The translations under genes were made by a program, and so were the position numbers. From Anaeramoeba ignava BMAN (Eukaryota > Protista > Anaeramoebae), in assembly GCA_028826165.1 (NCBI GenBank), contig JAPDFW010000055.1, positions 124,001-188,000 on the forward strand: a stretch of 64,000 bases of DNA. The letters run 5' to 3'. Within the stretch, counting starts at the first letter, position 1, and every line of letters begins with the position of its first letter. The notes beneath the pieces were generated by a model. It was not told the origin of the DNA. It saw nothing but the letters and a program-made list of their open reading frames with translations, and ran no database searches. Positions 17,581-25,814 of the stretch are shown here, one piece after another.

Positions 17581-17686
17581 TTGAATTGTTTTAAAATGAA
17601 AAATGAAAAATGAAAAATGAAAAATGAAAAATGAAAAATAAAAAAAGAAAAAAGAATAAATAAAGAATTAAAAATTAAATTAAATT

Positions 17687-17806
17687 GGATTCGGCCATAT
17701 CCAATCAAATACTCCAGGACACATTCCGAACCCTGAAGATAAATGATTGAGAGCTAAGTGAGTTAGTTGGATGGGGAACCGCCAGCGAAAACTTAGTGTT
17801 GAATCC
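17687..17806 (+). rRNA. 5S rRNA, copy 1
   Basis: 120 nt; helix I GGATTCGGC/GTTGAATCC, GGCCATA, CCGAAC..GAAGATAA, GGATGGGGAACCGCC (box C-like), then an oligo-T Pol III terminator. Confidence 0.93.
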
Positions 17807-17950
17807 TTTTTTTTTTTTGATTTATTTTTTTATTCCACTTTTTTATTTTTATTTTATTCCACTTTTATTTTTATTTTTTATTCCACTTTTTTATTTTTAT
17901 TTTTATTTATTTTTTATTTTATTTTTATTTGATTTATCTTCTTTTTAAAA

Positions 17951-18315
17951 ATAAAAACATTTCTCAATATAATTTACTTCTCATTATTATTATTAATTTT
18001 GGAAATTTATATTGTTTTTTCTTTTCTTTAAATTATAAAATCTTTTTCATTTTCATTTTCATTTTCATTTAAATAAATTCTTTTCATTTTTTTATTTAAA
18101 TTTATAATTTCTTTAATTTCAAAATATAATTTTGGATTTATTATTCTGTTTGAATAAATAATTTTCAAATATTTGATTTTTATTTTGAATTTGAATTTGA
18201 TTTAATCAATATTTTAATATTAATTTATTATGAAATTTAATTATTTCTTCATTTTCTTGTTTTAAATGAAATAATATTACAAAATTCTTTTTATTTTAAA
18301 ATAATTTAATCAAAT
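17951..18315 (-). pseudogene. Decayed fragment of the BTB half of an RCC1-BTB gene
   Basis: Collinear with 38254-38650 (e.g. CTTCTCATTA..GGAAATTTATATTG, GGATTTATTATTCTGTTTGAATAAAT, TTTAAATGAAAT..ACAAAATTCTTTT), with indels. Confidence 0.85.
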
Positions 18316-18472
18316 TAAATCAAAATCAAAAAAGAAAAAGAAGAATTGAATTGAATTGAATTGAATTGAATTGAATTGAAAATTTATTTTTGTTTTTGAA
18401 ATGATTTTATTATTTTTGTTTTTGTTTTTGAATTTTTGGAAAAAGAAAAGAGAAAGAAAAAAGAAATTGGAA

Positions 18473-22227: not shown

Positions 22228-22415
22228 TAAATCAAATAAAAAAAGGAGAATTGAATTGAATTAAGAATTGAATTGAATTGAATTGAATTGAATCAAAATG
22301 AATTGAAAATGTTATTTTTTTATTATTTTTTTTTTGTTTTTGAATTTTTGGAAAAAGAAAAGAAAAGAAAAGAAAAGAGAAATTGGAATTTGGAAATGAA
22401 ATTGGGAAATTGGAA

Positions 22416-25172
22416 TTAAAGATCTAAATCAGTATGAAGTTCTTTTTCTTTAATAATTTGTTTAACAATTTGATGTTTTCTTTTTTTCTTTTTGAATAAA
22501 ATAATTCCAATAATGATTATTGAAATAACAATAATTGGAATAATTATTCCAATAGTTATTGTTGTTGTTTTTGTTGAATTATCAGTTTTTTGACATGGTT
22601 CACATGGTTCATAAGGAGATAATGTTGTAATTGATGTTGTTGAATTAATTCCTGAATATTCATTAAATGAACAATTTAAATCAGATGATTGAATAAACTG
22701 AAATTTCATAATATTCTTCTCCTTTTAATCCTGAAGTAATTGAATAATAAGGTGCTAGTAAATTTGTTAAACAAACTGATGTCGAATTATAAGTAAATGA
22801 ATATCCTTTTAATCCATTTGATAAAATTAATGGATTCCAAGTACAAACAAATCCATTAATTAATGAATTACAATTTAATGAAGAAATATTTCCTAATTTA
22901 GCTTTTGTTGAAATAATTGAACTAGGTAATCCTAAATATGGTGTTTCACAATTTAAATCAATACATCCTCGAATTGAAATATTATATTCAACATTTCCTG
23001 ATATTCCACTTATTATTCCAATTATTTCATTTTCACTTAAATCAAGAGATGTGAATTTTTGCCAATTTGTTTTATTATCAAGTGAAATTGAATAATTTTT
23101 TGCATTTATTAATTTTGTGAAATTAAATTCAATTTCTTCAATTTTGGAAATTGTTTCATAAATTATTGGAGATGATAAATTATCAGTTTTAATTGAAATT
23201 GATGAAATATATCCACATTTATCATTTGAATTACATGATGATATATTGATTTGATATTCTTGATTTGGGAATTGAGCTGTAAATTGTTGATTTGATGAAG
23301 TTGGTTGATAATTTCCTGAATCATTTTGATAAATTGATTGATAAGTAAAATTATAATAAAATGGAATTGAACAATTAATTGATTGATTCCAAGTGCAATT
23401 AATATCAACTAAATTTGAAATTGAACATGAAATATTTGTAATTTCTCCAAATATTAATGAAATTGATGATTCAACAATTTCTCCTTTATCATCTACTTCA
23501 CATTCTTGTGTTCTACATCCACAAATTGAAATATTATAATCATTTTCACATTCAAAATTATTCCAAAGATAATAAAGTGAAGAATTATCAACTGAAATGA
23601 AAGATATTAAATCAGGTTGAGATTGATTAAGATAAGAAAGATTATAATGATTAAGATGAGCAATTCCTTCATTGATCTGTACATTTGGATAATTCCAAGT
23701 AACATTAATTGAATAATTTGAAGGATTTGATAATTGAAAATCTTTTACAGAATCAATTTTTGTTGTTAAATTAATAAAAGAAGAAGATTCACCACATTTC
23801 ATTGTTGCATTATCACAAGTTCTGATTTGAATTGAATAATATTCATTTCCAGTAATATTATCATAAAATGAAGAATTAAATAATTGATAATAAACATTCT
23901 CATCTTCAAGAATTGAAGAATCAATATCAATCCAATCATATCCATAATTAATTTGATATTTCAAAGTTGAAGGAAATTCAATTTTATTCCAATAACAATC
24001 AAATGATGAAAATAAAGATGAACAATTAAGAATATTAACTTGAGGAATTAAATTAGCTTCATAAACAAATGCTTGATTTGCAAGAGGAGCTCCAATAGCA
24101 GTAAAATTCTCATAAATTGAAACAGAAAATCCAAAATATGAATATGAAAGTCCATTCAAATTTTGTTCTTTATTCCAATTTGTTCCATTATATCTGTAAA
24201 TAAATACTTGATTTGCATAATAAGCACCAATAACAATAACATCTTCATAAATTGAAACAGAAAATCCAAAATATGTAGCTGATTCACTCAAAATTTGTTC
24301 TTGATTCCAATTTGTTCCATTATATCTGTAAATAAATGCTTGATTTGCAAAATTAGTTCCAATAACAATAACATCTTCATAAATTGAAACAGAATATCCA
24401 AAATATGAAGCTGAAGGTTCACTCAAAATTTGTTCTTGAATCCAATTTGTTCCATTATATCTGTAAATAAATGCTTGTTTTGCACCATAAGCACCAATAA
24501 CAATAACATCTTCATAAATTGAAACAGAATATCCAAAATATGAAGCTGATTCACTCAAAATTTGTTCTTGATTCCAATTTGTTCCATTATATCTGTAAAT
24601 AAATGCTTGTTTTGCATTATTAGCACCAATAACAATAACATCTTCATAAACTGAAACACTAACTCCAAAAAATGTGAAGCTGAAGGTTCACTCAAAATTT
24701 GTTCTTTATTACAATCAGTTCCATTATATCTGTAAATAAATGCTTGATTTGCACCATAAGTTCCAATAACAATAACATCTTCATAAATTGAAACAGAATA
24801 TCCAAAATATGAAACTGATTCAATCAAAATTTGTTCTTGATTCCAATTTGTTCCATTATATCTGTAAATAAATGCTTGTTTTGCAGTATAAGTTCCAATA
24901 ACAATAACATCTTCATAAATTGAAACACTCCATCCAAACCATCCTGAACCTGAAAATTGATCTAATAAATTCCAAATCCAAGCTTCATCTGGAGTAGAAT
25001 AATATCTTGTTGTTTCTGTTAATAATCTTGTTGTTTCTATTTCTTGAATTATTGATGATGGAATTATTGATGATGAAATTGATTTTTGATTATTTTGATT
25101 TGATTGAATTAAGAAAATATTGATAATTAAGAAAAAGAAAAAGGAAAAGAAAAAGAATTGATTTGATTTCAT
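22416..25172 (-). CDS. FG-GAP propeller/FN3/TM surface protein, copy B; frameshifts at ~24670 (homopolymer) and ~22690 (+1 nt)
   Basis: Paralog of 18473-21200 with near-identical signal peptide, FN3 stalk and tail, and 7 blades. Confidence 0.85.
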
Positions 25173-25624
25173 TTTTGTTTTGTTTTGTTTTTTTTGGATT
25201 GTTTTTTTTGCTATTTTTTATTTAATTAAGAAAAATAAATAATAAATAAAATAAGTTTATTTTGTGTTTTTGTGTTTTTATTTTGTTTTTTTGTGTGTTT
25301 TATTTTATGTTTATTTTATGTTTATTTTATGTTTATTTTATGTTTTTTTTGTTTTTTATTTTGTAAAAAATTATTTTTGCTTTTTTTTTTCTTACTTTTT
25401 TTTGTTGAAGAAAGAAAAAAGAATGAAAAAAAAAAATGAATTACTTTTTTTATTTGTAATTAAATATTTATTTAAATTAATTAATAAAAATAAATAAAAT
25501 AAAAAAAGAATTAAAAAAATAATTTAAATTGGATTAAATTAAATTAGATCTTATTTATTTAAAAATAATTAAAATAAATAAAAGAAAAAAAGAATAAATA
25601 AAGAATTAAAAATTAAATTAAATT

Positions 25625-25744
25625 GGATTCGGCCATATCCAATCAAATACTCCAGGACACATTCCGAACCCTGAAGATAAATGATTGAGAGCTAAGTGAG
25701 TTAGTTGGATGGGGAACCGCCAGCGAAAACTTAGTGTTGAATCC
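25625..25744 (+). rRNA. 5S rRNA, copy 3
   Basis: Same sequence as copies 1 and 2, followed by oligo-T. Confidence 0.93.
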
Positions 25745-25814
25745 TTTTTTTTTTTGATTTATTTTTTTATTCCACTTTTTTCTTATTTTTATTCCACTTT
25801 TATTTTTTTTTTTT

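Follow-up and report, generated by a model that had tools for sequence, protein, structure and literature searches.

We analysed a 64,000-nucleotide window of the genome of Anaeramoeba ignava (contig C56, positions 124001-188000, in an assembly of 42.8 Mb and 147 contigs; coordinates without a contig or locus prefix are those of the window), in which 5S ribosomal RNA (rRNA) genes alternate with genes for FG-GAP/FN3 membrane proteins. Three 5S genes start at positions 17687, 21669 and 25625, with periods of 3982 and 3956 bp. This arrangement, noted in a preliminary description of the same DNA, is confirmed by self-BLAST and by the Rfam model RF00001, which matches each of the genes over model positions 1-120 with 80.1 bits (cut-off, 38). 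The copies are identical to one another, as described, but the gene is 121 nt long according to Rfam, not 120 nt. The common flanks of the three genes are real as well, but they are not limited to the ~45 bp upstream and ~50 bp downstream that were originally recognized: the duplication spans the whole ~4-kb spacer.

In the self-comparison, the region 17627-20443 aligns with 21606-24390 at 92.0% identity, and the region 20442-21873 aligns with 24421-25823 at 91.6% identity. The array consists of two ~3.98-kb units that are ~92% identical and one additional 5S cassette, which represents a partial third copy (Table 1). Each unit encompasses a 5S cassette, a relic of an RCC1-BTB gene, one gene on the opposite strand that encodes a protein with FG-GAP and FN3 domains and a transmembrane (TM) segment, and a spacer. 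The ATG codon of the gene for an acyl-CoA-binding protein (ACBP) on the left of the array is separated from 5S copy 1 by 95 bp, and this left border harbors a heptanucleotide microsatellite.

Table 1. Features of the 5S array of A. ignava, its neighbours and related elements on other contigs
Feature	Position	Strand	Evidence and remarks
Repeat unit 1	17627..21605		5S cassette, BTB relic, FG-GAP gene 1, spacer; self-BLAST, 92% to unit 2
Repeat unit 2	21606..25560		self-BLAST
Partial third unit	25561..25870		5S cassette only, 310 bp; self-BLAST, 91.7% to 17627-17936
5S copy 1	17687..17807	+	RF00001, 80.1 bits; head-to-head with ACBP, tail-to-tail with FG-GAP gene 1
5S copy 2	21669..21789	+	head-to-head with FG-GAP gene 1, ~425-470 bp to ATG
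5S copy 3	25625..25745	+	head-to-head with FG-GAP gene 2
Other genomic 5S genes	C87:18-138, C87:4158-4278, C77:404593-404713		Rfam
Conserved 45-nt core upstream of 5S	17642..17686, 21624-21668, 25580-25624	+	six-copy alignment
T-run directly after 5S copy 1, predicted terminator	17807..17818	+	sequence, alignment
5S downstream flank	17819..17947	+	2-3 copies of TTATTCCACTTTT; alignment; equivalents at 21790-21883 and 25746-25810
FG-GAP/FN3/TM gene copy 1	18473..21200	-	broken by a 29-bp deletion near 20443
FG-GAP/FN3/TM gene copy 2	22575..25172	-	+2 indel in a T-run near 24672; +1 at 22690, just before the TM segment
BTB relic, unit 1	17952..18310	-	C-terminal part of RCC1-BTB gene; tblastn of P0046
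BTB relic, unit 2	21884..22228	-	tblastn of P0046
BTB relic, C87	3713-4065		tblastn of P0046
Antisense-5S exons	17683-17805, 21674-21787, 25633-25743		antisense of the 5S genes
ACBP gene	17330..17592	-	87 amino acids; unique left neighbour of the array; Pfam ACBP, E 3.6e-32
(TTTAA)n microsatellite	25811..27454		~327 copies, 1.64 kb; right border of the array; TRF
HECT ligase gene	27578-32149		beyond the microsatellite; HECT domain match

The presence of an antisense FG-GAP gene in each spacer, likewise proposed in the preliminary description, is well supported, with highly significant matches to FG-GAP_2 (E values of 1e-23 and 8e-25). The rest of the proposed domain architecture holds in part. 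The fn3 domain is below the Pfam cut-off of 25 bits in the window copies (19.7 and 23.1 bits) but clear in paralogs (47.8 bits in P0046), and the TM segment is found in both copies, with the frame broken. Intact paralogs are intronless genes for proteins of ~900-970 amino acids (aa) that contain an N-terminal signal peptide, several 44-aa FG-GAP_2 repeats, FN3 domains and one TM segment near residue 865-890, which is followed by a short basic tail; in the intact paralog P0001, a signal peptide and a single C-terminal TM segment are predicted from hydropathy. The spacer gene is a member of a large, lineage-specific family of predicted type I membrane proteins.

Both window copies are split among frames by frame breaks, of which the small indels may be sequencing errors. 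Gene 1 is represented by open reading frames (ORFs) of 256-271 and 623-656 aa in differing frames, with the TM segment and the tail in frame with the second ORF; base-calling error is an improbable cause of the 29-bp deletion in this gene. The two receptor copies on contig C87 are intact (919 and ~960 aa). Between family members, the ratio of nonsynonymous to synonymous substitution rates (dN/dS) ranges from 0.8 to 1.35, consistent with evolution that is either relaxed or diversifying.

The public gene models M0811_05251 and M0811_05252 (P0005 and P0006) bridge the frame breaks of the window genes. The last exon of these models encodes 41 aa that are the antisense translation of the 5S gene and is an annotation artefact. 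A search with this exon, meant to reveal further mis-annotated 5S loci, retrieved no proteins other than the two of the window. The 5S genes themselves appear to be unannotated in the public record, which needs correction on both counts.

5S genes across the genome and their link to the receptor family

A whole-genome Rfam search identifies six 5S genes in the assembly, at three loci on contigs C56, C87 and C77, and a DNA search with the 5S cassette recovers these six copies and, next to the one on C77, a short 5' fragment. Over their 121 nt, the six genes do not differ from one another. The preceding 45 nt vary little or not at all among the copies and are presumed to be an upstream promoter of RNA polymerase III (Pol III), and a run of 8-12 T directly follows every copy. 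With this upstream core and the predicted T-run terminator, the six genes would be functional Pol III genes. As assembled, this is not a classical separate 5S ribosomal DNA (rDNA) array, in which the 5S gene and a short non-transcribed spacer form tens to thousands of units: the unit of ~4 kb includes a protein-coding gene, and six copies are assembled. The same Rfam search detected no 5S gene on the contigs with small-subunit (SSU) rDNA (C25, C26 and C32). The SSU rRNA gene of ~2.27 kb is complete only at C26:17366-19631 and partial at C25:73472-74235 and C32:11542-12304, and the assembly seems to have collapsed or fragmented the rDNA of A. ignava.

Just upstream of the real genes, there are short tandem partial copies of the upstream core with the first 5-25 nt of the 5S gene (L011 5764-5983, that is, C77:404764-404983; L007 227-264 and 4364-4401; and ~90 nt upstream of window copies 2 and 3). 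They resemble relics of promoter and 5' end of the kind left by slippage. On the downstream side, TTATTCCACTTTT can be ruled out as a 5S-specific element, with 2878 exact copies in the genome against one for the reversed control. The 14-mer TTTATTCCACTTTT (2878 genome copies; reversed control, 1) is an abundant motif-bearing minisatellite that resides mostly in clustered intergenic arrays with periods of ~48-165 bp; its sites in the window are 17830-17890, 21810-21850, 25767-25801 and 59244-59270.

The conservation of the 5S genes stands out against the rest of the unit. The core, comprising the 45 upstream nt and the 5S gene, shows 0-2 mismatches in 166 nt between any pair of loci. The C-terminal coding sequence (CDS) of the receptor gene differs by 2.6-4.3% within the clade formed by the C56 and C87 genes and by 6.6-9.3% in comparisons with C77. 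The spacer between the 5S gene and the ATG codon diverges the most, with 9% mismatches within C56, 21-25% between C56 and C87, and 25-34% in comparisons with C77. Thus, across the six copies, none of the 121 nt of the 5S gene differs, compared to 2.6-9.3% of CDS positions and 9-34% of spacer positions between loci. Purifying selection and/or gene conversion preserves the identity of the 5S copies while their surroundings drift, and both receptor copies in the window are decaying. The two C87 units (L007 184-708 and 4324-4869) show a distinct pattern, with mismatches at 0.6% of the spacer (3/517), 2.6% of the adjacent CDS and 3.0% of the relic; the low value for the spacer suggests a recent conversion tract around the 5S gene or else a faster change of the CDS.

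All six assembled 5S genes, at all three loci, adjoin members of the FG-GAP/FN3/TM family. Five of the six are oriented head-to-head with a paralog, at 420-570 bp from its ATG codon, the exception being copy 1, which faces the ACBP gene. The C77 locus contains a single 5S gene at the 5' edge of an array of three FG-GAP genes, the other two of which have no 5S gene. We conclude that the linkage of the 5S genes with this family is real and non-random. Chance association at C77 is unlikely given that the family genes with their flanks account for less than 1% of the genome, as inferred from the paralog count, and that the head-to-head geometry is the same. No telomere repeat, which would hint at a subtelomeric location of the family, was seen at the end of C77.

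The reverse does not hold. Of the at least 71 paralogs in the family, which are spread over more than 30 contigs and are often arranged in tandem, only 5 are linked to a 5S gene. We retrieved 20 further ten-kb loci holding 33 paralogs and found in them no 5S cassette and no 5S gene or relic thereof, even with relaxed BLAST; neither these loci nor the window contain a transfer RNA (tRNA) gene, and the 15 loci among the 20 that were scanned with Rfam contain no Rfam RNA. A Pol III-targeting mobile element that would carry the family was rejected as an explanation given this lack of tRNA and other small-RNA genes near the paralogs, which holds for 24 ten-kb paralog loci and for the window, and a 5S-bearing mobile element, such as a Cassandra terminal-repeat retrotransposon in miniature (TRIM) or a 5S-derived short interspersed element (SINE), given that there are only six cassettes at three loci.

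In database searches, ~80 annotated proteins match the family, all of them from A. ignava (locus tags M0811_*); outside this species, only bacterial and metagenomic FG-GAP proteins match, with ~30% of the query covered. A cross-species search detected no orthologue of the HECT neighbour gene. The search of representatives with CEP44 yielded mostly low-complexity matches; P0126, the one plausible CEP44 homologue (GCA_027625915.1, 23% GC), has no 5S gene within 10 kb, but at 24% identity this result is uninformative. Beyond the cassette, BLAST comparison of the C77 spacer with those of C56 and C87 is uninterpretable because of AT-rich low complexity.

Origin of the repeat unit

The relic of the RCC1-BTB gene offers a clue to the origin of the array. 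It is located between the stop codon of the FG-GAP gene and the next 5S cassette and corresponds to aa 1239-1371 of P0046, a public model that fuses FG-GAP and RCC1-BTB. In C56 units 1 and 2 as well as in C87, the relic ends at about aa 1369-1371 of P0046, exactly at the downstream flank of the cassette. In the terminal C87 unit, by contrast, the relic reaches its natural end at aa 1424, and no 5S gene follows. The order of an FG-GAP gene and then an RCC1-BTB gene on the same strand is common elsewhere in the genome (L017, L024 and L035). The 5S-linked gene of C77 has no BTB relic. Intact RCC1-BTB genes are found in the window as well, three of them in tandem at 38034-43708 on the minus strand, and at L017, L019, L024 and L035, RCC1-BTB genes are interleaved with FG-GAP paralogs.

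As read from the sequence, the pattern A-[B-C]-[B-C]-D points to a plain tandem duplication with the 5S gene inside the unit, rather than to a crossover between two 5S genes. The boundary between the relic and the cassette is a novel C|B junction, so that the 5S gene lies within the duplicated segment and not at the crossover point. The same junction is present in C56, which implies that the C56 and C87 arrays derive from one founding event. In the protein tree, the four 5S-linked genes from C56 and C87 cluster in a single clade, with a Shimodaira-Hasegawa-like approximate likelihood ratio test (SH-aLRT) value of 97. The proposal of the preliminary description that the 5S direct repeats serve as anchors for the expansion and reshuffling of the family finds no support at the level of the family, in which many paralogs lie in tandem arrays that have no 5S gene, and the founding junction does not join two 5S genes.

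The following scenario can be envisaged. In the ancestral state, a 5S gene would have been located head-to-head with an FG-GAP gene, ~0.5 kb upstream of it, with an RCC1-BTB gene downstream. A single non-homologous tandem duplication would then have fused the downstream edge of the 5S cassette with a site within the decayed BTB relic, producing the junction that is common to C56 and C87. Subsequently, the copy number would have been altered by unequal crossover across the entire 4-kb unit, and two units with one cassette would have come to lie between the ACBP and HECT genes in C56. Once duplicated, the 4-kb unit, with 92% identity between the copies, lends itself to unequal crossover far more readily than a gene of 121 nt. 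It seems likely, then, that the locus is a short tandem segmental duplication with a ~4-kb unit and that the 5S gene is a passenger, possibly a beneficiary in terms of gene dosage, of duplication in a duplication-prone family, rather than the engine of its expansion; this assessment pertains jointly to hitch-hiking and common descent as a single model.

Several observations weigh against this model. The C77 gene belongs to another clade (SH-aLRT 96), together with four 5S-less genes, and lacks the relic, so that a single descent requires later 5S-less copying or gene conversion; the association at C77 can be explained by an old head-to-head pair of 5S and FG-GAP genes from which 5S-less copies budded off. 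Contig C87 starts inside a 5S cassette, which means that its array is truncated at the contig end and that the number of 5S genes is a lower bound. Uncorrected nanopore errors may account for the two small indels in gene 2. Finally, the C56 array is bounded by the cassette, starting ~45-55 bp upstream of 5S copy 1 and ending ~85-125 bp downstream of copy 3, and ends of this kind at the cassette edges are not expected from random breakpoints but rather from integration of a circle or from ectopic exchange. Under such a route, the 5S cassettes would act as portable homology: one or two units, excised as a circle or moved by ectopic exchange, would have entered a solitary 5S gene between ACBP and HECT, where recombination within the ~170-300-bp cassette would yield 5S-X-5S(-X-5S). 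The core that is identical across the loci would be the homology tract, and the spacer next to the C87 5S genes, so much less diverged than the CDS, suggests recent conversion around the 5S gene; the units of C56 carry the relic/cassette junction that originated in a tandem array, so C56 would have received a segment that was already repeated. However, there are microsatellites at both ends of the C56 array, and these may have erased or created the boundaries; the downstream flank consists in part of a motif that is repeated throughout the genome; the sequence points to no more than one such event; and the rest of the family spreads without 5S genes. We regard this origin of the C56 array as unlikely, albeit with some plausibility, and some 5S-mediated exchange between loci is possible. 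The broader notion that 5S genes are portable recombination handles, with circles or ectopic exchange moving and multiplying the adjacent receptor genes between 5S loci, appears distinctly doubtful. Were it true, every 5S gene would end up head-to-head with one receptor family, and the number of 5S genes and the local receptor repertoire would co-evolve.

In another reading, selection for 5S dosage would drive the amplification of the unit: duplications that include a 5S gene would be retained, with the receptor gene carried along and left to decay. The dearth of 5S genes, only six in 42.8 Mb and none on the rDNA contigs, is compatible with such selection, and so is the perfect conservation of the 5S genes next to two receptor copies in the window that are frame-broken, with dN/dS of ~1. 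Nevertheless, both receptor copies of C87 are intact, dN/dS is near 1 also among 5S-less paralogs, such as C77 genes 1 and 2, and the 5S count is a minimum given the truncated C87 array. Dosage selection, which seems improbable as the driving force, overlaps with the passenger model and does not exclude it. A functional pairing, whereby the divergent 5S gene would serve the receptor gene as an insulator, a nucleolar tether or a common upstream element, could account for the recurrence of the head-to-head arrangement at 420-570 bp for five of the six 5S genes and in two receptor subclades. This pairing is, however, highly improbable considering that at least 66 of the at least 71 paralogs have no 5S gene, that the partner of 5S copy 1 is the unrelated ACBP gene, that the spacer from the 5S gene to the ATG codon is the fastest-diverging part (9-34%), and that the receptor copies next to the 5S genes of the window are broken. 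The technology behind the assembly, R9 nanopore and Illumina reads assembled with ABruijn (PMC11550330), the break of C87 inside the repeat, and the presence of small indels raise the question of whether the tandem repeat is an assembly artefact. That seems scarcely credible: the units are ~8% apart and differ by numerous substitutions and indels, C87 has the same architecture and a divergence of its own, and the C56 array has unique flanks on both sides.

Comparison with known 5S linkages and implications

5S genes are known to be linked to 35S rDNA, histone, small nuclear RNA and spliced-leader repeats (Drouin & de Sa 1995, as cited in PMC3692318). The A. ignava arrays resemble these cases in that a 5S gene is contained inside each tandem unit of another gene family, with two units and a cassette in C56 and at least two units in C87, and in that the 5S copies are identical while the spacers diverge, as under concerted or purifying evolution. 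Unlike these cases, the partner in A. ignava is a lineage-specific, fast-evolving membrane protein family rather than a housekeeping repeat. Furthermore, linkage does not extend to most or all members of the partner family but is confined to 5 of at least 71 genes, and the arrays, as assembled, are tiny, at 2-3 units. Our literature searches found no case of 5S genes linked to a variable surface-protein family, which is no proof of absence. The A. ignava genome paper mentions neither the 5S genes nor the FG-GAP family (PMC11550330).

According to a published model, units that lie between short flanking repeats are amplified in tandem by unequal sister-chromatid exchange ('SRS + unit + SRS', PMC8831618). 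The arrangement 5S-X-5S-X-5S resembles such a unit between short direct repeats. It departs from the model in that the common relic/cassette junction and the 5S-less terminal unit of C87 argue against two pre-existing 5S repeats at the first duplication. Cassandra TRIMs and 5S-derived SINEs are comparable insofar as 5S sequence is repeated along with non-5S DNA, but the A. ignava copies are complete, identical 5S genes, the only ones of the assembly and six in number, and show no long terminal repeat structure or dispersal. Dispersed, low-copy 5S genes are also known from small protist and fungal genomes: Plasmodium falciparum has three clustered 5S genes, and those of Schizosaccharomyces pombe are dispersed. 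Like these, the 5S genes of A. ignava are few, lie off the rDNA unit and possess an upstream element of their own and a T-run; unlike these, they all neighbour members of a single protein family, and three to five of them belong to unit repeats.

Thus, the structure is real and interpretable, and its mechanism is mostly ordinary; what is unusual is that one and the same family provides a neighbour for every 5S gene of the assembly. 5S genes are known as passengers in the repeat units of housekeeping multigene families; the partner here is a fast-evolving, species-specific family of surface proteins in a little-studied anaerobic metamonad. The six copies at three loci make up a small, tractable case for weighing purifying selection against gene conversion. 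The locus appears to capture an early stage at which a dispersed Pol III gene is becoming a tandem repeat by hitch-hiking, with the founding junction still readable.

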